64,000 nucleotides of DNA from Gekko japonicus (GCF_001447785.1 NW_015163109.1:75400-139399); one strand, 5' to 3'. Counted from the stretch's first letter, positions 10,172 through 51,937 are shown. Translations and numbers: made by a program. Notes: generated from the sequence alone by a model not told the origin.

Positions 10172-10661
10172 GGTGACAAAAACGAAAAACCTGACCAGGC
10201 GGCCGCCATGTTCGCAAGCGTCTCAGCGCCAATTGGCTCCGCGAGCGGCTCGCTTAGCGAATGCCCTTTGCTTAGACATCCCACGCGGTCGTCTGACAGA
10301 GGCTGGAGACGAAATAACAGAACATGCACGCGCCCAAGCCAGACCCCGCTATTCTTACGACAACTTCCGGTTTAGCCTTTTCCGCTTAGCCTTCCAGCGC
10401 AAAGTATAGAGGCCTTTCATCATAGAGATGGCGAGTCCTAGACCGACTCCCAAGTCTTTCACATTTGTCCTGAAGGCGAGCCTTGCATTTCTTTCACTTT
10501 TCATCTCGTGAAAGGGAGTGGGAGAGCATGTTAATCAAGGGGGCGTGGCTTCTGCCGCGGGAACGGAAGAAGTGGAGTGCGCTGTTTTTGTCTTGGCAGG
10601 GCGCATGAAGGAGATTCGTCCGCAAAGGTGACTGCGCGCTTTCTGTGCGACTGCGGGCAGC
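10172..10661. promoter_or_regulatory. CpG-rich bidirectional promoter and 5' UTRs of ERCC8/NDUFAF2
   Basis: 490 bp between divergent ATGs; YY1-like CCGCCATGTT 10203-10212 and AGATGGCG 10426-10433; palindromic CCAATTGG 10229-10236; ETS/GABP ACTTCCGG 10363-10370 and CGGAAG 10564-10569; GC box GGGGCGTGGC 10540-10549. Confidence 0.85.
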
Positions 10662-10788
10662 ATGAACCGTGTCTGGAGGCTTTTGCGTTCCCTGAAGCTC
10701 GGGGTTATTGGGCCAGAGAAGCTGCAGGTGGGCGTCGACCACTTCGGGAACAAATATTATCGGATCCCGAAACATGAAACTTGGGCAG
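10662..10788 (+). CDS. NDUFAF2: NDUFAF2 (complex I assembly factor 2, NDUFA12-like) coding exon 1
   Basis: MNRVWRLLRSLKLGVIGPEKLQVGVDHFGNKYYRIPKHETWA(G) with the family VGxDxFGNKYY motif; 127 nt; donor G|GTGAGG; head-to-head with ERCC8 as in human. Confidence 0.95.
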
Positions 10789-11585
10789 GTGAGGTTCAGG
10801 AGACGGATGGACTGACAGACCGAAACCTCAGTTCTGTTCACGCTACGTTTGCATCTCAGGGCCGTCTCGAGGTTTTATTTAGAAATCATTATTGTTGTTA
10901 TTATCGTTGTTGCTTTTTATTTGATTTATTAGTGTTAGCTTATTGTCACTATTTCTCAGCGCATTTGTTGACTGAATTTACAAAGTCCACAAGAAAATGT
11001 TCAAAGCATACAGCTAAAAACACACTTGAAAAACACACACTCCAGATTAGAGAAACCATTGAAACGGCCAGCAAACCTAATTTTTAAAAGTATACTTTCA
11101 AAATAAAAAAAAAATCACAAAGGTTCCCCGGGCTTATTCAAAACTGTAAAGTTGCACCTTAAGAATTTATTTTAACAATTTCTGTACTGGCTCATACCTA
11201 TAAAGCTCTTGAAAGCGTGTAAGTAGGTGACCACTGAAAACAGTAGAAGCTAATAACTGAGTTGCTGCTTTTTTCAATGTTGGTGTTGCTTAACTTAAAA
11301 TGACACCAACATTGATAAAAGCAGCAACAATATTTTAAGCAAAAGAAGGTTTTATTTGGCAATTTTATGGACTGCTTTGGTTTATAAAGAAATACACAGT
11401 AGGAGATTTCACAAGATAAAACCAATTAATAAAAACATCAAAGTAAAAGACTTAAGGGTTAATTTTTTTAAAAAAAAATCAGAATTGTCAAATGGATAGC
11501 ACTGTCTTTACCCCATCCCTCAACTACTCCTTATTTATATTGACTGAGAATGTGGCCAGGTTATTCAAAGGAGTTGAGGTGAAAG

Positions 11586-24558: not shown

Positions 24559-25600
24559 AGTGTAGTGTAGTGGTTAGAGAGTTGGACTAAGATCTGGAAG
24601 TCCCAGGTTTGACTCCTTTCCCTGCCATGGAAGATTTCTGGGAGACCAAGATCTGAACACGCTGGAGAAGTGGGCAGATGTGAACAAGATGCAATTTAAC
24701 AAGTGCTGAGTTCTACACCTGGGTAACAAAAATGAGGAACACACATACTGGATGGGGAGATACACTTCTGAGCAGCAGTGTGTGTGAACAAGATCTCGGG
24801 GTAAGGGTGGACTGAAAGTTAAATATGAGCAGCCAGTGTGATGTGGTAACAAAAAAGGCTAATGCAAACAGAGGCGTGACATCCAGATCACAAGATGTCA
24901 TAGTCCCGCTGTACACTGCCTTGGTCAGGCTGCACCTGGAGTATTGTGTGCAGTTCTGGAGGCCTGACTTCAAAAAGGATGTGGACAGAATGGAGCAGGT
25001 GCAGAGGAGAGCGATGAGGATGATCGGGGGCCTGGACATCAAGCCATATGAGGAAAGGCTGAGGGACTTGGGAATGTTTAGGTTAGAGAAGAGGAGGTTG
25101 AGGGGGGACATGATTGCTCTCTTTAAGCATTTGAAGGGCTGTCACATAGAGGAGGGCAGGGAGCTGTTCCTATTGACAGATGGGGATAGGACTCGCAATA
25201 ATGGGTTTAAATCAGGGGCGGGAAGATGCTGGCTGGATATTAGGAAAAACCTTTTTACAGTAAGAGTTGTGCAACAGTGGAATCAGCTGGGAGGTGGTGA
25301 GCTCCCCCTCACTGGCAGTCATTAAGCAGCGGCTGGACAAACACTTGTCAGGGATGCTCCAGACTGATCCTGCACTGAGCAGGGGGTTGGACTAGATGGC
25401 CTATATGGCCCCTTCCAACTCTGTGATTCTGTGACCCTGGGCCAGTCACACACTCTCAGTCTAACCTACTTCACAGGGTAGTTGTATAGATAAACTGGAG
25501 GAGAGGAAAATGACATTAGCTTCTTTGGGGCAGTTTTGGGACCCCATTGGGGAGAAAGGCAAGTGGGTATAAATGTAGTAAATAAATAATAAATGAAATA
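24559..25600 (+). mobile_element. tRNA-derived SINE interrupted by CR1
   Basis: Head 24559-24647 (TGTAGTGGTTAGAG..GGTTTGACTCC) resumes at 25432 (TGACCCTGGGCCAGTCAC) through to the (TAAA)n tail. Confidence 0.75.
24648..25431 (+). mobile_element. CR1 LINE 3' fragment
   Basis: LYTALVRLHLEYCVQFWRP..YEERLRDLGMF; ends CCTTCCAACTCTGTGATTCTGTG (CR1 ATTCTRTG terminus). Confidence 0.9.
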
Positions 25601-42447: not shown

Positions 42448-43442
42448 TAAGGGGATCTATAGTGGTTGGTAAACCCATGGGAGTGCAGTGTGGGAATGCT
42501 CTTGCCTCTTTCCTGCATGTTGTGGGAATTGGCTTCCTCTTCCCCGCCCCACATACACCTTAAATAGGTTTCCCTCTTAGCCAGAATTTTCTAATGGTCT
42601 AGCTAACAGGTCCTGATTATCAAGGAACACTGGAGCAGTAATTGGCAGGTTAGGATTAGCTGTGGCAAAAGTTGGGGGAGGTTGGAGGAAGAGTTTGGGC
42701 ACAGTACGTCCCCTCTGATCCTGTCGTGTATTTGTGAAAATGAGCTCATCCAATTGATCCTTTTCTGCAGCTGTATGTGTTCAAAACGTTATCATAAAGT
42801 ATAGCATATTCATTTTTTAAAAATAAGATACTTTCCACATATTCATTTGTGTATCGCAACTGTTTTATTTAAACAAGATAGTTAATCTGTCTTGCATGAA
42901 CAATTAAGACATGTTGAAAGGCAGCTGTCATATTCATGTCTTATTTCTGTACTAACAAAATTTCATCTGTCAATCAGATACACGTTTTATATTTTTCAGG
43001 AGGAAGGTTATAATAAAAATTGCAGGACGTAACAGACAGCTAGCATGTCCTTGGATTTTCAACAACTAGACAATAGCTTATGAAATTTTTTTGGCATACT
43101 AATATGGTGTCATGGATTGGGGTGTGGTAATTTCAGTTCACATCCTGCTTGCACCTTATCCCTGGGAAGGTCATCGTACCTCCAACTTTCATTATCAAAA
43201 TTTATCATGTCAGATTAAACGTAAGAATTGTAGATGAAGATAAAAATTGAGATGAGAATTGTAAAATGCACTGAATGCTGTGACCTACCATTAAAAGAGT
43301 ATGGCACTTACGGCCTCTGTGTCCAAATTGTATGAAATTTTTGGAAAAGTCAAATTTCCAATCAAGGAATGTTTAATTAAAGCTCTTTCAGTGACAGAAA
43401 TGTATATGTTAGCCACAGTGGTTCATCTCAGCAAGAGACCTT

Positions 43443-43572
43443 GGCTGCCGTCACACACACTAAATAATCCACTTTCAATACACTTTCCAACTGGATCTTG
43501 CCAGTTCACACGGTAAAAATCCAGTTGGAAAATGCACTGAGAGTGGATTATTTAGGGTGTGTGACCACAGCC
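43443..43572. mobile_element. Palindromic MITE (Harbinger-like GGCTG..CAGCC ends)
   Basis: Arms CACACACTAAATAATCCACTTTCA..TTCCAACTGGAT / ATCCAGTTGGAA..AGTGGATTATTTAGGGTGTGTG; second copy at 60982. Confidence 0.75.
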
Positions 43573-43599
43573 TTTATTTATTTATAGGCCACCTCTCTC

Positions 43600-44812
43600 T
43601 TTTTTTTATTGACTCTTCTAAAAAGAAGAGAGTTTATTATTTTTTCATATAAGAAAAGGGAAGGTATATAGTGGGATAAAGAAAAGGTTGGGTGATATTA
43701 TTATTAGTATGTTAATCTTTTATGAGTAATACAAAAATCTTCTTTTGGCTTCTTCTGTGAGCTGTCAGTCATCTTTCATCTTAACCTGTAAAGAAAATAA
43801 AAATTGTTAATGGATTAGTAGTGTCCTTTTGGTTTTTGTTAGTAAAGTCTTTTCAAGCGCTTTCCGAACTTGTCTTCATGGTTTGGGCAGCCTCCCTTTA
43901 ACGTCTCTCAAATTATATGACGGACCCTTTCCTGCTCCTTTATCTTCCGGGGTCTTGACTTCCCCCTCCGAGCCGCTGTCTCTGTCACTGTCCAAATCCT
44001 CCCCTGTGGCGAGTGCTGCTTCCTCCGGACTGGCGTGCCTCTTCAAAAAGTCTTGAGCTTTGAAGATGGAATCAATCTTCTCTCTTTTATCTTTGAACTT
44101 GAAAGTAAGCCCTTCTGGAATCAACCAGCGATAGTTAGTTTGATGGTTCTGCAAGAATAAGGTCAATCCTTTGTATGCTTTCCTTTTCATTCGAATTTCA
44201 AATGGAACATCCTTCAAAATCCTGATTGTTTGCTCTCCAATCTTCATGGGCATTGCTGAAGATGCTTTTAGTATTTGATCCCGAACTTTCTGCTTTGTAA
44301 ACTTGACCACCACTTCTGCCGGCAGGTTGTTCAATCTTGTAAAATTGGAATAGGCTCTGTAAACCAGATCCATTTCCTCGCTTATTTTTTCCACTTCCCA
44401 GCCGGTGAGTGTTGCCAAGGCTTCCGCTAAAATACCTCGGAGATCCTCTTTTTCCCATTCTTTTATGCCCTGAAATCGGAGAGTCAAATTTGATTTTTCC
44501 ATTTGAAGCATCATTAGCTTTTTATCTTGCAACATTTGGTGTTTTTCTATTTTATCCACCTTTTTCTTGACCTTTTGGGTATCTTCTGTTGAGACCAGGC
44601 ACTTTTGCGTGATTTCCTCCATCTTCTTGGCTGTGTCATTTAACTGAGTCTGTTGAGTATTGAGGACACCTTCCATATTTGTCAATGTTTGGTTGATCTT
44701 TTGCATTTGCTCCAGCAGAGGGCGCAGAAGTTCACTCTCCTGTTGATTGACAGCCGGTTCCAGGAGGCGGGAGCCGGCACCGGAAGTTCCTCCCAGCTTC
44801 TTTGCCGGCTTG
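43600..44812 (-). mobile_element. ORF1-only L1-type retroelement 1 (half-L1-like), 5' truncated
   Basis: 15-bp TSD TAGGCCACCTCTCTC at 43585-43599 and 44813-44827; AATAAA and poly(A); uninterrupted L1 ORF1p-like frame; no ORF2. Confidence 0.85.
43876..44812 (-). CDS. L1 ORF1p-like protein (coiled coil, RRM, CTD); open frame, start codon missing
   Basis: Heptad-rich N-terminus, LRFQGIKE, DLVYR, PAEVVVKF..RDQIL, KDVPFEIRMKRK, YRWLIPEGL; the ORF-track start at 44829 is a TTG in flanking DNA. Confidence 0.75.
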
Positions 44813-44827
44813 TAGGCCACCTCTCTC

Positions 44828-45690
44828 AATGAGACTCAAAGCAGATTACAAAGTACAGAAAGAGGGGGGGATGTGATCATACAGTATAGGACATCAAATG
44901 AACAGTGCAATAGGACTAAGGAGTAAAACCTTAAATGGCAATGCAAGCAGTGATGTCATTGTACAGTATAAGATATAAAATGAACAGTGCGATAGAATTA
45001 GGAATACAAAATTAAATGACAATGTAAGCAGCAAGCTGCCCAGGCGAACATAATGTGAGCAGTGCAGAATGTGGGATTCAAAAGGTACAAGGCAATGCAG
45101 TACCCAGTCTCCACTCCCATACGAAGGTGCTCATCGGGACCATTCTGTCCCACTACAGATCTAGTTACAAGAATTCCCTCCTGAACATGTCTGTTTTGCA
45201 CAGTCTCTGGACTGTTAGTGCTGTGGGAGCCTTCCTGACCTCCTCAGGCAGGCTGTTTCACAAGGTGGGAACCACCACAGAGGATGAACACAAGCAAGCA
45301 GGTGCTGATCTTACTCATTTGCATGGGGGGAAAGTGTCTGTTCAGATGGCTGAAGCTGCTGTGGTGGAGTGTAGTAAGAGAGGCGGCTCTTCTGGTGTGT
45401 GGGTCCTAGGCCATAAAGGGCCTTATAGGTGATGACCAGTACCTTGAATTGAGTTTGGTAACTGATTGGTAGTCAATGGAGCAACTGCAGGATGGGTGTG
45501 ACACGCATGTTGTGCCTGACACCCACTAGTAATTGGGTTGCCATATTCTGTACCAACTGGACAAGGAAAGCTGAGTTCAAGGAAAGACCCTTGTAGGCTG
45601 CATTGCAGTAGTCTAGTCTCAGGGTAACTATGGCATGGATCCATGTGGCCAGAGCAGCTGAATGAAAGCAGAGGACCAACTGGCAAACAC
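44828..45690 (-). mobile_element. L2 LINE 3' fragment (host of element 1; its tail is at 43573-43599)
   Basis: Minus-strand LATWIHAIVTLRLDYCNAAY..LQLVQN..VTPILQLLH. Confidence 0.75.
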
Positions 45691-46579
45691 AGGGAAACGT
45701 GGTGGTGGGCGAAGGGCTGACTGGGTAAGGAGGAGAAGGGATCAGTGCTTAAAGTATATCCTTTCTTCCTGTCCCTCTCTCAGTCAAAGGGACCCTAGTA
45801 ACCTTGCTAATCACCTGTAGAACCTAAGATGGATGTTTGCTTATGGCTTGATACCAAGTCGGATTGTGGAAAAAGAGTGTCCCGGGATTTAATCCTGGAA
45901 GGAGACAGTCTAGTATACATTGCAGAGATTGTAGCAGTATGAACAGAGAGAGAGAGAGCAGTATGGACAGAGAGATCTCAGTTGTGCTTCTGTACCCCAG
46001 GCTTCTTGTTGTCACATTAGCCTAGGCTTGGTGGGTGGGGATAGGTAGTGGTTGCTATCTAACAGGCCCCTGTATATGTACCTGGTGCTGTGGGTTCAGG
46101 GCACAATAAGAATTCTGTTGATCCATCACTCATGGTACTGCCTGGCTGTCTTCCTTCCTAGTTGATTGGGTACTGAGGATCAGGGATAAAGATGTAGAAT
46201 TTCTGGAAATGTTAAAGCCGTGGGAAGTTCTGATGCTCCTGTTGAAGCCTAAGTTGACCTGTATCTCTCCTTATATATAATTGAATAGTGGGTGCCAAAG
46301 TTCTAAAATGCACTCCTTTAGTGTTAGGCCGGAAAAACTGCCACTCAGAATACACTGGCTGGGTTGACTGGCTGCTTTGTGCAGTCCCGCCCAGCGTTCC
46401 AAGGTCATTTACATATGGAAGCTGATTGGACTACACTCCATTCCACACCTCAAACTCCCCCCCCCCCCCGCAAGGCAGTTGGAATTTTCAGTTTGGGGGA
46501 GGAGAATGATGTCAGCTGCTCGCTAGGCAGAGGCTGTGGGGTGTGTGTGTAAAGACAGACAGGCAGATAAAGGTTGGCT

Positions 46580-48640
46580 GATGGTTGCCAACTCCAGGTT
46601 GGAACTCCAGGACATAGGGTTGCCAACTCCAGGTTGGAAACTTCCAGGATGTTTTAGGGATGAAGCCTGCTGAGGGTGGGATCTGAGGAGGAGGAGGAAG
46701 AGGGGGACCTCAGACAGATACAATGCCATACTGCCCACACTCCAGACAAGCTGTTGCCAGTCTCCAGGTGACAGCTGGAGAGATCTTAAAGCTTTGGTGC
46801 TACTTCAAAGTTCCCCAGGAGCCCAAAACAGAGTAGTGTTTTGGAAAATCTTGAGGAATTGTTTGGTGCATTTACGATGGGGCTCCTGGGGAACTATTGT
46901 TGCCAATCTTGGCCCAGCAGCCATCAAACCATTCTCTTCAACCCCCTGCTGTGCAGCTGACTTCCCCCTAGGGTTGCCAATCTCCAGGTGGGACCTGGAG
47001 ATCTCCCACTGCTACAATTGATCTCCAGATGACAGAGATCAGTTCCCCTGGAGAAAATGGATGCTTTGGAGGGTAGACCCTATGACATTATACCTGCTGA
47101 GTCCTTCCGCCCCCCCCCCGCCCAATGCTGCCCTCTACAGAATCCACCCCCAAATCTCCAGGTATTTCCCTCCTTAGAGCTGGCAACCCTACATTCCCCT
47201 CAGTGCCTGTTGGGAGTGGGTGGTGGGGGAGGGGAAGGGAGTGGGCAACCGGAGGCTTCTGCCTCCTGTCTCCGGTCCTGGAGTGGGGGTGGTGGNNNNN
47301 NNNNNNNNNNNNNNNNNNNNNNNNNNNNNNNNNNNNNNNNNNNNNNNNNNNNNNNNNNNNNNNNNNNNNNNNNNNNNNNNNNNNNNNNNNNNNNNNNNNN
47401 NNNNNNNNNNNNNNNNNNNNNNNNNNNNNNNNNNNNNNNNNNNNNNNNNNNNNNNNNNNNNNNNNNNNNNNNNNNNNNNNNNNNNNNNNNNNNNNNNNNN
47501 NNNNNNNNNNNNNNNNNNNNNNNNNNNNNNNNNNNNNNNNNNNNNNNNNNNNNNNNNNNNNNNNNNNNNNNNNNNNNNNNNNNNNNNNNNNNNNNNNNNN
47601 NNNNNNNNNNNNNNNNNNNNNNNNNNNNNNNNNNNNNNNNNNNNNNNNNNNNNNNNNNNNNNNNNNNNNNNNNNNNNNNNNNNNNNNNNNNNNNNNNNNN
47701 NNNNNNNNNNNNNNNNNNNNNNNNNNNNNNNNNNACGGAAGGCCGATGCCTCCGTCGCCCGGCCGAGATTGGGGGGGTGGGGGCGAGGCAGGCGATGGAA
47801 GGCCGATGCCTCCGTTGCCTGGCTGGAGTGGCCGCGGGGGGGTCTGGAGTCGGGCGGCCGCTGGCGGGGGACGCAGTCGCCCGGGCCGAGATTGGGGGGG
47901 CAAGGCGGGCGACAGAAGGCCGATGCCTCCGTCGCCCGGCCCTCTACAGAATCCACCCCCCAAACCTCCAGGTATTTCCCTCCTTAGAGCTGGCAACCCT
48001 ACATTCCCCTCAGTGCCTGTTGGTAGGCAACTAAGCTTGGTCCTGTCACCTACTTTGGCCTTTGGGAGAAAACACATTGGGGCCAGTCCTGATAGGGTTG
48101 CCAACTCCCGATGGGAAATTCCTGGAGATTTGAGGGATGGATCCTGAAGAGGGTGAGGTTTGAGGAGGAGTGGGACCTCAGACAGGTACACTGCCATAGA
48201 CTCCACCCTCCAAACCAGTCAGTCCGACATAGGGAACTATTGTTGCCAATCTCCAGGGGAGGGCTGGAGAGCACTCAGTATTACAACTGCTCTGCAGAAG
48301 GGAGGGCAGAAGTCAGCTGAAGTCAAAGGGGCAGATAATGGTAGGTTGATGACTAGCTGGGAAGGAGATGGGGTTGCCAACTACATGCTGACAAATTCCT
48401 GGGGATTTGAGGGGTGGAGCCTGGAGAGGGTGGGGTTTGCAGAGGGGTGGGACCTCAGACAGGTAGAATGCCATAGACTCCACCCTCCAAACCAGCCATT
48501 TCGTCCTGGGTAACAATTGTTGCCAATCTCCAGGTGAGGGCTACAGATTACTCACAATTACAACTGCTCTTCAGGTAGCAGAGATCAGTTCCTCTGGAGA
48601 AAACAGTGGACTCTGTCATTATACCCTGCTGAGGTCACCA
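46580..48640. repeat. Cluster of GGGTTGCCA-TIR MITE copies plus GC-rich minisatellite around a gap
   Basis: Multiple GGTTGCCAACTCC starts; unit GGAAGGCCGATGCCTCCGTCGCCCGGCCGAGATTGGGGGG at 47735-47940; about 83-bp direct repeat on both sides of the gap. Confidence 0.7.
47296..47734. other. Assembly gap (439 N)
   Basis: N run. Confidence 1.
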
Positions 48641-48811
48641 CAGCAAATTGACACTGTTTGCCCAAAGCCAGAGCACTGCCCCAGAGCCTCTTTCTAGATC
48701 TCGTTGTATTGCTTTCACAATGGGCTTTACTGCTAGTCAATCAATAAGTATTACAGCAATGGACCAGCAGACGTGGGAAATTCCATAGATTTGTTGATTG
48801 GTGATAATTGT

Positions 48812-49040
48812 ATTTATGTACTTACTCCATTTATACTGTCTTTCTCCTCAGTGGGGATCCAAAGCGTCTTATATCATTGTCCTCTTCTCAGTTTTATCGT
48901 TACATCAACCCTCTGAGGTAGCATAGACTAAGAATGTGTGACTGGATCAAGGTCACCCAGCAAGCTTCCGTGGCAGAGTGGGAATTCAAACCTAGTCTTC
49001 CATATCCTAGGCCAGCACTCCGACCACTACACAACACTGA
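48812..49040 (-). mobile_element. tRNA-derived SINE
   Basis: AAGGTCACCCAGCAAGCTTCCGTGGCAGAGTGGGAATTCAAACC..CCACTACACAACACTG. Confidence 0.65.
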
Positions 49041-49050
49041 CCATCAGTGA

Positions 49051-49400
49051 GTTAGATTCAGGTGGGTAGCCATGTTGGTTTGAAGCAGCAGAACAAAGTT
49101 TAGAGTCCAGTGGCACCTTTAAGGCCAACAAAGTTTTATTAAAGGTGTAAGCTTTCGTTTTGCACGCACACTTCTTCAGATACAATGAAATGGAAATTAC
49201 CAGTCTATATACATAGGTAGAGAATGAGAGCAGTAAATTAGCATACAGCATAATGAAGATGTTTAACAGGCTGAAGGACCAAACAGGAATAACAAGCTTA
49301 GTTGATATGGTGACTATTTGTTTGGGTTTAATTCCAGGGGGAAACAGAGCAAAGCAAATAAATAGGTCAAAATTGGAGATTGATGGGCAGATCAATTAAT
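49051..49400 (-). mobile_element. Penelope-like element fragment
   Basis: GGTGGGTAGCCATGTTGG..GTCCAGTGGCACCTTTAAGGCCAACAAAG..AAGCTTTCG..CACTTCTTCAGATAC. Confidence 0.65.
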
Positions 49401-49444
49401 TGTGGAATGCTGAGACTAATCAGTGGATTATTGAGCCTGTTTTG

Positions 49445-51291
49445 TTGTTATAGAATTTTTATTGCTTTTCACTATAAACTACAAATCTACACACTACATA
49501 TTCAGAGTAGCAAGGTACAATAATGATCTATCTTTCGCTTTGGATGTTTCCCTATATATTCAAGTTTACAATATACCGTTTAATTTCTACATAATAAGTA
49601 TTCAAATAGAAAGAACAAAAATTTCTTAATTTTAGTATCGCATATGGGCAATAATATACATTCTTTAGATTCTGACATAGAGAAATCTCAGAACTTCATT
49701 TGAATGTCTTCTTGTCTTTACGCTTCTTCTTCTTCTTTTGCCAGGGGATTTTAACCTTAGAAGATCTGGGTGCAGCAGCTCCCAAATAAGAATCAAAGTC
49801 AGAGTGAAAGATTTCACCCAGGGACATCGAAGTAGATGAGGAGCTGTTGGTGGCTGATGCCTGATGATCGCTTTTTTCTTCTGTCGCCTTCTTTTCCTCT
49901 GCTTCTTTTCTTTTTTTTGTTGGAGTTTGATGTTGCTTCAGGAATGCTTCTGCTTTAGAGAGAGAGTCAATCTTTTCCTTCTTCTCTTTGTAGTTGAATA
50001 TAAGACCTTCTGGTAAAATCCATCGGTATTGGACATTGTTCTTTTGAAGGAATGTTGTGATATTTCTGTATTGCTTCCTCTTCTTACGTATTTCATATGG
50101 AACATCTTTCAGTACGTTTATCTCTTCCTCTTGGATTTTTAATGTTGTGGCAGTAGAAGCTTTAAGTATCGAGTCTCTTGTTGATCATTTTGCAAATTTA
50201 ACAAATATTTCCCCTGAAAGATTATTTTTTTCCACAGACTCTGAATAAGTTCTATAAATCATGTCTATGTCTGCTTGCAATATTTCATGTTTGCTGTTGA
50301 TCAAGGGGGCCAATGCTTCACTTAAGATTTCATCTTTTTTTTCCTGGTACCCCTTGAAATCTTAAAACATATAGGGAGCTTTCCACTTGCAATTGTAATA
50401 ATTGTTGTTTTTCAGAAGCTCTTTCTTTCTCAGCAATGTCCATTCTTTGATCCATCTCTTTGGTCTTAGTTTCGACCTGTTTTAGCTTTTTGACCGTCTT
50501 CTCTGATTTGTCTTTGGTTTATTTCAACTCCTTCTGCAAATCATCAAATTTCTTATTGTGATTCATCGGCTGATCCAGCAGGGGTGCAAGGCTTCAGAAA
50601 TCGTACCAGTTAAATCGGTGGTAGTTTCCGGTCTTGTGACCGGTGATGCTGTGCTGGTGCTTCCTGTGGTGCCTCTGGACGCCATTTCCCTCCCCACGTT
50701 GCGACATTGTTTACATTAAGGTAAAAGTACTTAAAAGTTCTAAGGTTTTTCTCTGGATTGAATAATGCGCCCCACCGCGATCCGCTTGGATTGGGTGGGT
50801 TTCTAACAGCTTATTGTCAGCTTGCTTCCTGTTTCGCTGCTTTTTGCGCTATAGGGTAGGGTTCCTCCTCCTGAGAGTTTCCCTCCCCTTCCTCTAAGGG
50901 GCTTTGCCATCTCACTGTCAGTTCCTCCACCCTCTTTACTTTTGTCTTTCTTTTGAAACTTGTTAACTCACTATTTTTTTCGCTGGGTGTCATCCCATAG
51001 GGAGAGTCCTTTTGCTTAAGTCCTTGCGCACTCTGGTTTGGTAATGTCTCAGGTCGCCATATCTAGTCTTGGGGCAGCGGGACCTTAAAGAGCAAATAAG
51101 AGCCTCAATCCTTCAGCCGCGGCTTTGGGAGTGACTCCTCCTACGCTCTAGGCTAGAAGCTCCCTGCAAGAGCTTCGTGGGGGGGGTCAAAGGCTTCCGA
51201 ACCCCCTCCCTGCCGCCTCGATCCGAATCACATCCATCAGAGCTCGATGGAGTGCGTTCGTTTGCGAGTCGCCAAAAACCGGAAGTCCTCC
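49445..51291 (-). mobile_element. ORF1-only L1-type retroelement 2 (half-L1-like), apparently full length, 1847 bp
   Basis: 13-bp TSD TGAGCCTGTTTTG at 49432-49444 and 51292-51304; CpG-rich 5' UTR beginning GGAGGACTTCCGG; ORF1; about 250-nt 3' UTR with AATAAA at 49458-49463; no ORF2. Confidence 0.85.
49696..50685 (-). pseudogene. Disrupted L1 ORF1p-like gene of element 2
   Basis: Manual translation MASRGTTG..SEALHP/LLDQ..LRFQGVP..EALAPL..DMIYRTYS..NNLSGEIFVKFAK*STRDSILKAS..LKDVPYEIRKKRKQY..YRWILPEGL..KIDSLSKAEAFLKQH..KKKKKRKDKKTFK*; 2 frameshifts, 2 internal stops. Confidence 0.8.
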
Positions 51292-51937
51292 TGAGCCTGT
51301 TTTGAATGGGATTGAACTCCCAATAAAAGAGCAGGTTTGTACTGTAGAGATGCTGCTAGTTGAAAGGAACATCCTGCCCTTGGAAGTTTAAGCAATTAAA
51401 GCACTTTTACCTGCTAAGGCTTTTAAAAAAGTATTTCTGTTCTTAGTCATTTTATCTGGCCACTTTAAGATTTTATGATCTATTTCACGTATCATTTTAT
51501 ATGTTTTTGGCTGGCTGCTCTTCTGATTTTGATTACACTGTGATTTTAATGGGTCTTCTGTTGTTAATCTATCATTTTAGTCTTATACTGCTTTTATTTT
51601 ATATTCATACTGCTGGTTTGGATGGTTTTTACAGCTGATTGAGTTGGGTTATTATTGGTATGCTACTGTGATTATTGGTTGATTATTTCTGCCTTTGTTT
51701 TTAATGTAGTAAGCTGCCTCCAGTGATGTGGGGTGGAAAATTTTTAATGGAAAGTTTCCCAATGCTATATTTTTCTGTGGAAATTTTTCTGCCCCATGTA
51801 TATAAATGTAGTCAGTTCATTGTTCATTTATATATAGTTTCCACAGGGCCATTGTCCTACAAATCAATCATGTCCTGCAAATTAATCATGTCCCGCAAAT
51901 CAATCAGGGCTAAATGGGATAGATGGGATATGAATAG

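Follow-up and report, generated by a model that had tools for sequence, protein, structure and literature searches.

A 64-kb stretch of the Gekko japonicus genome (hereafter the window) carries two minus-strand insertions, E1 and E2, each with a putative L1-type ORF1 and no ORF2. These insertions probably belong to HAL1-like families that are multi-copy, encode ORF1 alone and depend on L1 ORF2p for mobilisation in trans, and on balance they are best regarded as retroposed copies of two diverged, L1-derived non-autonomous families. E1 comprises a body of 1,213 nt between exact 15-bp TSDs, and E2 a body of 1,847 nt between exact 13-bp TSDs, the latter with a 606-nt 5' UTR, an ORF1 of about 990 nt and a 3' UTR of 251 nt (Table 1).

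The initial annotation had described two separate insertions with their own TSDs, a purine-rich target of the L1-endonuclease type, an AATAAA near the 3' end and an A-rich tail, and most of this description was borne out. Both duplications are exact, reading TAGGCCACCTCTCTC for E1 (+ strand) and CAAAACAGGCTCA for E2 (minus strand), while the target begins with GAGAGAGG in E1 and with CAAAA in E2. AATAAA is present in both elements, in E2 at 14 nt before the element end. The tail is an A8 run in E1 and, in E2, only a short A-rich stretch with no true poly(A). Between the two elements, at distances of 2.4 kb (E1) and 1.7 kb (E2), an assembly gap sits in a GC-rich duplicated block; since it lies outside both, it affects only the 4.6-kb spacing quoted for them. 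No further copies were found in the window by blastn of E1 and E2.

Table 1. Features of the two insertions in the 64-kb window (positions counted from its first nucleotide).
Feature	Position	Strand	Remarks
E1, whole element	43600-44812	-	
E1 TSD, 3' copy	43585-43599	-	15 bp; exact repeat of 44813-44827
E1 TSD, 5' copy	44813-44827	-	exact repeat of 43585-43599
E1 A8 tail	43600-43607	-	3' end of E1 3' UTR
E1 AATAAA signals (n=2)	43633-43638 and 43605-43610	-	6-bp hairpin between
E1 3' UTR	43600-43875	-	276 nt, 29% GC; 6 stops in each frame
E1 ORF1 (predicted coiled coil, RRM, C-terminal domain)	43876-44812	-	open frame; first ATG is codon 42, 44704-44706
E1 ACTTCCGGT, ETS-type core of lizard L1 5' terminus	44779-44787	-	25 nt from 5' boundary; consensus from PMC5381506
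Assembly gap (N)	47296-47734	.	in neither element; 70-nt repeat, 97% identical, on both sides
E2, whole element	49445-51291	-	
E2 TSD, 3' copy	49432-49444	-	13 bp; exact duplication
E2 TSD, 5' copy	51292-51304	-	exact duplication
E2 3' UTR	49445-49695	-	251 nt, 27% GC; AATAAA at 49458-49463, short A-rich end
E2 ORF1 remnant	49696-50685	-	about 330 codons; two in-frame stops, two frameshifts
E2 in-frame stops	50519-50521 and 50185-50187	-	
E2 frameshifts	near 50565-50575 and near 50338-50345	-	the second in an A8 run
E2 5' UTR	50686-51291	-	606 nt, 50% GC, 26 CpG; GACTTCCGGT at 51278-51287

The claim that ORF2 is missing is confirmed by these boundaries, as units of such length between TSDs leave no room for it, and both 3' UTRs are closed, with 3-9 stops in every frame. 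The 3' UTRs, first put at 250-275 nt, measure 276 nt in E1 and 251 nt in E2 and are AT-rich, and the absence of evident similarity between them was likewise reproduced, blastn of E1 against E2 finding none in the UTRs. In clade-1 L1 of Anolis, the 3' UTR spans 194-570 nt at 33% GC and the inter-ORF spacer 0-110 nt (PMC5381506). With Anolis as the yardstick, the 3' UTRs of the two gecko elements (251-276 nt, 27-29% GC) fit the clade-1 3' UTRs and exceed the clade-1 spacer.

The 5' ends carry a further L1 signature. The 5' extremity of Anolis clade-1 L1 is GACTTCCGGTG (PMC5381506), and within the window ACTTCCGGT is found three times where 0.11 matches are expected; E1 and E2 each have one of these matches at their 5' end, and the third lies about 300 nt upstream of the probable first exon of NDUFAF2. 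In E1, the extremity reads GAaCTTCCGGTG, 23 nt inside the boundary, and the element is almost without a 5' UTR, its reading frame passing through the motif. In E2, GACTTCCGGT begins 4 nt from the 5' boundary, where the element reads GACTTCCGGTt. Measured against a consensus from Anolis in a host that is Gekko japonicus, both elements have the clade-1 extremity, and not that of clade 2. Further likenesses to L1 clade 1 of Anolis carolinensis include the 5' GACTTCCGGT(G), a CpG-containing 5' UTR (in E2), an A-rich reading frame, an ORF1 about 1 kb long and an AT-rich 3' UTR measuring a few hundred nt (Boissinot & Sookdeo 2016, PMC5381506). The differences are that an ORF2 of 3.7 kb is present there and absent between the TSDs of E1 and E2, and that the 5' UTR spans 792-1,465 nt there, compared with 606 nt in E2 (PMC5381506).

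The two ORF1p sequences are alignable, as had been proposed, being 41% identical across 239 aa (E=1e-58), with every listed motif present; at the nucleotide level, blastn connects E1 and E2 through a 177-nt ORF stretch only, at 68%. A profile of 40 relatives, searched against the PDB, matched human L1 ORF1p (2ykp, chain 2ykp_A) with E=1.9e-14, as well as 2ldy (E=1.9e-12) and 2w7a (E=5e-9). Modelling of E1 ORF1p with AF2 on the 40-sequence alignment gave a pLDDT of 84 and predicted a helix spanning 29-113 and, after it, two alpha/beta domains, the model from the single E1 sequence being poor (pLDDT 48). With the former model, Foldseek placed 2yko (an L1 ORF1p trimer), 2ykp and 2ykq on top, at E=2e-10 and TM 0.75, and the Atlas neighbours of the protein are clusters of L1 RRM domains. 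The identification of an L1 ORF1p gene is therefore upheld by the profile match and the predicted fold, but the HMMER check with Transposase_22 that accompanied it fails to score E1 directly. PF02994 had no match in the E1 protein even at E<=10 and was matched by only 4 of the 40 relatives (best 3.8e-5), Pfam returned no L1 family for the E1 protein or the E2 pieces, and phmmer of the E1 protein against the PDB yielded nothing. The lack of a single-sequence Pfam match is attributed to the divergence of this ORF1p family. Altogether, the modelled structure supports the E1/E2 protein as an L1 ORF1p of type II, with a coiled coil, an RRM and a CTD.

In a tree of 108 squamate ORF1p sequences, E1, E2, P0001, P0002 and P0151 form one clade (SH-aLRT 99). 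The C-terminal extensions, which had been contrasted as acidic in one element and basic in the other, turned out to be variants of one squamate-wide pattern, in which an acidic/Ser-rich stretch is followed by a basic end. A word-index protein search recovered one relative only, and no relative was found in the metagenome contigs scanned. Host gene models of squamates include ORF1p homologues, and these annotations are obvious chimeras in which the ORF1 part is accompanied by zinc fingers, a 7TM domain or gag.

In E1, 317 codons (43876-44829, counting the stop) can be read without interruption, which makes this the longest real ORF of the window. The start codon of E1 has been lost: there is no ATG before codon 42, and the closest relatives begin 5-17 codons upstream of a common GGTS motif. 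The ORF1 of E2 is a pseudogene; for blastp and the tree alone, its breaks were bridged with X. Because the ORF1 of E2 is broken and E1 is without its start codon, both copies are inactive.

Evidence on copy number concerns E1 and comes from its comparison with a genomic run that has a single-copy depth of about 72x. Summed depth, which adds up all contigs of at least 85% identity and does not represent copy numbers, amounted to 8.6k-34k in the 3' UTR (roughly 120-470 times single-copy), 11k-26k in the adjoining tail-coding part and 37k-450k in the ORF core, the conserved ORF1 also recruiting reads from ordinary L1. In these genomic reads, the 3' UTR is about as repeated as the coding part next to it, and the junction between stop codon and 3' UTR is bridged by several contigs from other copies. 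Among 24 of the 734 loose ends, none pointed to a consistent run-on beyond the poly(A) site of E1. There was also no site at which numerous molecules start or stop, and none of the displayed loose ends fell at the E1 poly(A), which is a weak negative. A contig joining 43585 to 44813 was considered as an empty allele, but it contains 8 extra letters and was read as another copy of the host repeat. In addition, three RNA-seq runs covered the ORF and 3' UTR of E1 at 10-120x and the flanks at near 0-5x. As most of these RNA reads are 90-95% identical to E1, they are ascribed to other copies, and they could stem from intronic or read-through transcripts. Finally, 15 of the 25 differences scored between the E1 ORF and its family, which are the best-supported 25 of 433, are synonymous, against 30% expected (P=0.002).

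The architecture (ORF1 alone, with insertion marks of the L1 type) and the identity of ORF1p are supported, and an ORF1-only lineage is favoured over one-off accidents, short of proof. Such a lineage is favoured by the clade-1-type 5' terminus common to E1 and E2, by their position in one ORF1p clade (SH-aLRT 99), by an E1 3' UTR about as repeated as the neighbouring ORF, by synonymous enrichment within the E1 family, and by coverage of ORF and 3' UTR in three RNA-seq runs. Alternatively, E1 and E2 might be sporadic by-products of bicistronic L1s, formed by early polyadenylation in the ORF1-ORF2 spacer and retroposed independently in trans, without any heritable family. L1 is known for premature polyadenylation, but we regard this origin as unlikely: the 5' motif of both elements is that of clade 1 and not of clade 2, and clade-1 spacers are just 0-110 nt (in Anolis); the E1 3' UTR is repeated hundreds of times, about like the adjoining coding part, with no common continuation displayed; and the same architecture occurs in two diverged elements. 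Furthermore, since retroposition of a full-length ORF1-only copy carries the promoter along, such a copy would itself found a family.

It is more doubtful still that the elements are one-off, internally deleted L1 insertions, in which ORF2 disappeared at integration or later, the 3' UTR of L1 was retained and no further propagation followed. The length and composition of the 3' UTRs, which fit those of lizard L1, would agree with such a deletion, yet two independent, diverged elements would have had to lose exactly ORF2 and both retain the stop of ORF1. The E1 junction between stop codon and 3' UTR recurs in several other copies, and the E1 ORF shows an excess of synonymous differences, which also argue against this reading. 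Since an ORF2 deletion in a source element could give rise to a HAL1-like family, deletion is a possible origin of the proposed families more than a rival to them. Processed pseudogenes of a single-copy, domesticated ORF1-derived host gene, in the manner of L1TD1 or the Lyosin exon, are highly improbable and were rejected on copy-number evidence. In favour of this reading, ACTTCCGGT doubles as a host promoter element (as in the match near the probable NDUFAF2 first exon), host gene models include homologues, and sauropsids are known to have domesticated ORF1 (PMC12129022). Against it stand a genomic depth equivalent to hundreds to thousands of copies (as summed depth, not copy counts), the presence of two families that are only 41% identical, a 5' end that agrees with L1 termini, and the evident chimerism of the host-gene annotations.

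Returning to ORF1-only families, E1 and E2 carry ORF1 but lack a reverse transcriptase, and their spread most likely relied on the enzyme of complete L1s. We infer a heritable ORF1-only state throughout the family and mobilisation in trans by L1 ORF2p. A source copy would be transcribed from an internal 5' promoter carrying the ETS-type GACTTCCGGT of lizard L1, and its RNA would be polyadenylated at the element's own AATAAA. The element's ORF1p, an RNA chaperone that combines a coiled coil with an RRM and a C-terminal domain, would then coat this RNA, and the endonuclease and reverse transcriptase of ORF2p from an autonomous L1 would act in trans, producing 13-15-bp TSDs by target-primed reverse transcription. 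Expected transcripts would be polyadenylated, 1.2-1.9 kb long and begin at the GACTTCCGG motif. A bolder version, which we entertain only tentatively and hold to be rather improbable, derives E1 and E2 from a single ancient ORF1-only ancestor; they would then represent a monophyletic, long-lived and still transcribed squamate 'half-LINE' lineage, whose own ORF1p would have been maintained by selection while diverging to about 41% identity and which would have parasitised L1 ORF2p throughout. If true, this would contrast with mammalian HAL1s as repeated, short-lived offshoots.

Comparable systems are found in other animals. HeT-A, at Drosophila telomeres, is a gag-only non-LTR element whose reverse transcriptase is supplied in trans by another element. 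E1 and E2 resemble it in retaining only a gag/ORF1-like gene, but HeT-A belongs to the Jockey LINE clade, is telomere-specific and has a host-beneficial role. L1TD1 of mammals (PMC4161310) and the Lyosin exon of MYL4 in sauropsids (PMC12129022) likewise represent ORF1p-derived coding sequence without ORF2; however, these are single-copy, syntenic host genes or exons, whereas E1 and E2 are TSD-flanked, polyadenylated insertions, multi-copy in the case of the E1 family. The closest parallel is mammalian HAL1 (half-L1; Smit 1999; Bao & Jurka 2010, summarised in PMC5753468), a non-autonomous retrotransposon which encodes ORF1p only, lacks ORF2 and is derived from L1. HAL1s share with E1 and E2 an ORF1 without ORF2, L1-type insertion marks, a presumed dependence on L1 ORF2p and an origin from L1. 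In contrast, E1 and E2 reside in a squamate, their ORF1p falls in a squamate-specific clade too diverged for PF02994, and they bear the 5' motif of lizard L1. An origin independent of mammalian HAL1 is likely, considering that repeated HAL1 origins are reported in mammals. A full-text literature search yielded no description of HAL1 with lizards or reptiles as hosts, and the elements count as undescribed within the scope of this search.

In mammals, HAL1s are for the most part old and degraded. Should the ORF1-only state prove heritable, squamates would provide a HAL1-like system that is young and expressed and has open reading frames. At a practical level, squamate gene sets mis-annotate such ORF1p sequences as parts of host genes. 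Provided the state is heritable, it would become testable whether an element's own ORF1p aids the capture of another element's ORF2p (cis-preference), how non-autonomous and autonomous L1s compete where many L1 lineages coexist, and whether RNAs with ORF1 alone lower or raise the activity of L1.

The window carries two separate ORF1-only insertions of L1 type, E1 and E2. The initial annotation had reported both, and the observation was confirmed with corrections, among them that the ORF1 of E2 is broken and that E1 has lost its start codon. The more probable reading is that they represent two diverged families of HAL1-like, ORF1-only L1 derivatives that would use L1 ORF2p in trans.

Coordinates of E1, E2 and neighbouring features in the window
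Feature	Position	Strand	Remark
E1	43600-44812	minus	body 1,213 nt
E1 target-site duplication	43585-43599 and 44813-44827	minus element	15 bp; 18 bp if one mismatch is allowed
E2	49445-51291	minus	body 1,847 nt
E2 target-site duplication	49432-49444 and 51292-51304	minus element	13 bp
Repeat hosting E1	44828-45100 and 43560-43599		(TAAA)n-like tail at end
Direct repeat within host repeat	44870-44918 / 44952-45000		spacing 82 nt
MITE-like repeat	43422-43575		hairpin-forming; directly adjoins E1 3' duplication
SINE-like unit copies	46583-47060 and 48086-48603		several; GGTTGCCAACTCCAGG...
SINE-like tandem pair	48116-48574		277 nt; 86% identical
70-nt unit, GC-rich block	47147-47216 / 47957-48026		97% identical
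Further repeats, GC-rich block	incl. 47737-47959		spacing 60 to 117 nt
N run	47296-47734		only one inside the finding
Probable NDUFAF2 first exon region	10363-10371 and 10662-10796	+	with upstream ACTTCCGGT
166-codon ORF	24825-25325	+	contains …LHLEYCVQFW…

The E1 protein matched no Pfam family and, with phmmer, no solved structure. An exhaustive HMMER protein search returned 367 relatives at E<=1e-3, and those that are named come without exception from squamates (Gekko, Varanus, Anolis, Pantherophis, Zootoca). Scans of metagenome contigs yielded no relative. A profile built from 40 relatives matched human L1 ORF1p at E=1.9e-14. Furthermore, an AF2 model based on the same 40 relatives (pLDDT 84) consisted of one helix of 85 residues and, after it, two alpha/beta domains; each of the ten best Foldseek matches to it was a structure of the L1 ORF1p trimer or of its RRM-CTD part (E ~1e-10), and the Atlas neighbours of the protein were L1 RRM clusters. 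Because of this profile match, predicted fold and neighbourhood, the product is identified as a diverged L1 ORF1p of squamate type. The claimed L1 ORF1p gene was thereby upheld in its identity, though not by a direct Pfam domain match. The reported contrast between an acidic and a basic C-terminal tail was replaced by one pattern across relatives, in which a short basic end comes after an acidic/Ser-rich stretch. In the squamate relatives (alignment A1, P0002-P0015), an acidic/Ser-rich linker beyond the CTD precedes a basic motif, often h-x-T/L-R-x-x-x-K-K. In public squamate gene sets, ORF1p relatives sit within unrelated host-protein annotations (P0004, P0031, P0059, P0104, P0106), among them 'apolipoprotein A-IV-like' (Gekko), segments of the Varanus PRDM9, Pantherophis UBE2E2 and Zootoca GPR157 models, and an Anolis protein with a Ty3 gag domain; these look like chimeric models that took in a retroposon ORF.

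The two proteins share 41% identity across 239 residues, and the only alignable DNA is a 177-nt ORF stretch (68%). The UTRs failed to align, which for the 3' UTRs agrees with the initial annotation. A maximum-likelihood tree was built from 108 ORF1p sequences, namely P0001 and the representatives 230-460 aa long; shorter and longer matches were excluded, and E2 carried X at each of its four breaks. In this tree, E1, E2 and three Logan-derived proteins formed a clade with SH-aLRT 99, at an E1-E2 separation of ~1.7 changes per site. Given this common clade, the two are mutual close kin within known squamate ORF1p.

The E1 frame, with 317 open codons, is the longest real ORF of the whole window; its codons 1-6 consist of duplication and flank sequence. 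Since its earliest ATG is codon 42 and the two closest relatives start 5-17 codons upstream of a common GGTS motif, the start codon has been lost; the simplest cause would be truncation of a few dozen nucleotides at the 5' end. The 276-nt 3' UTR (29% GC, six stops per frame) contains two AATAAA signals separated by a 6-bp hairpin and ends in an A8 tail. Read contigs showed a moderately repeated element on either side of E1, and contigs of another copy of it span the insertion point without E1 (joint 43585 to 44813); E1 was therefore inserted into an older repeat, present at ~15-60 copy equivalents. The adjoining MITE-like repeat is among the most abundant of this genome (summed genomic depth <=2.8 million vs 72 for single-copy sequence), with heavy RNA-seq coverage in both orientations. 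Elsewhere in the window, the plus-strand 166-codon ORF, which had no Pfam match, presumably resembles the C-terminal part of a CR1-type LINE ORF2.

The '4.6 kb' spacing between E1 and E2 is the only figure that rests on the estimated length of the assembly gap. This gap is separated from E1 by 2.4 kb and from E2 by 1.7 kb, and is crossed by neither element nor any frame discussed. The 70-nt unit occurs on both of its sides, and the repeats of this GC-rich block are its likely cause.

E2 comprises a 606-nt 5' UTR (50% GC, 26 CpG), an ORF1 of ~990 nt and a 251-nt 3' UTR (27% GC). The AATAAA stands 14 nt before the end of the element, and its terminus is a short A-rich stretch without a poly(A) run. 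Two frameshifts, of which one falls within an A8 run, and two in-frame stops have left its ORF1 dead; E1 and E2 are thus both dead copies. In Anolis, L1s of clade 1 start with GACTTCCGGTG(N8)ATGGCG, and those of clade 2 with another, Sp1-like motif (Boissinot & Sookdeo, PMC5381506). Herein, GACTTCCGGT was found 4 nt past the duplication of E2, and GAACTTCCGGTG 23 nt inside E1, in whose family the motif lies inside the reading frame. Because of this L1-type 5' motif near its duplication, E2 is a full-length copy with a putative L1-type internal promoter region. The window contains three copies of ACTTCCGGT, where 0.11 are expected. The third copy lies ~300 nt upstream of the probable NDUFAF2 first exon, as would suit an ETS/GABP-type promoter element. 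Residues 19-44 of this candidate exon matched the solved NDUFAF2 chain 8ca5_t (E=8e-4), with no Pfam match; provided that the assignment is right, E1 and E2 lie antisense within the first NDUFAF2 intron.

The main, though unlikely, alternative source of such copies would be ordinary L1s undergoing recurrent, non-heritable premature polyadenylation. In Anolis clade-1 L1s, the inter-ORF spacer measures 0-110 nt and the 3' UTR 194-570 nt at 33% GC; the tails of E1 and E2 (251-276 nt, 27-29% GC) fit such a 3' UTR and not the spacer. A clade-2-type spacer would be long enough, so the argument holds only if the 5' motif is correctly assigned and the Anolis data are valid for this species. Genomic reads aligned to E1 and its flanks (single-copy depth ~72) gave summed depths, which do not equal copy numbers, of 8.6k-34k in the 3' UTR, 11k-26k in the adjoining tail-coding part, 37k-450k in the ORF core, 47k in the 5'-most 60 nt and 1k-4k beyond the 5' boundary. 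These figures put the abundance of the 3' UTR close to that of the family-specific ORF part and show no 5'-truncation gradient. Contigs of other family copies (records 2-4) bridged the junction from stop codon to 3' UTR, and no consistent run-on past the E1 poly(A) site was seen among the loose ends listed, a fraction of all.

In three unstranded RNA-seq runs, the E1 ORF and 3' UTR were covered 10-120x, vs 0-5x in the flanks. Most of these reads were 90-95% identical and hence stem from copies other than E1; only six in the largest run were >=99% alike. Among the best-supported, and hence biased, subset of 25 ORF differences between the family majority and E1, 15 were synonymous, where 30% would be expected under the transition/transversion mix seen (P=0.002). 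This excess suggests that ORF1 was under purifying selection in the source elements.

In mammals, HAL1 elements are well established and arose several times independently (PMC5753468); in searches of the full-text literature, no report of them was found for lizards, snakes or reptiles. In a HAL1-like family of this gecko, the founder may have lost ORF2 by internal deletion or through polyadenylation after ORF1. Since a full-length copy retains its promoter, the ORF1-only state would be inherited by either route.
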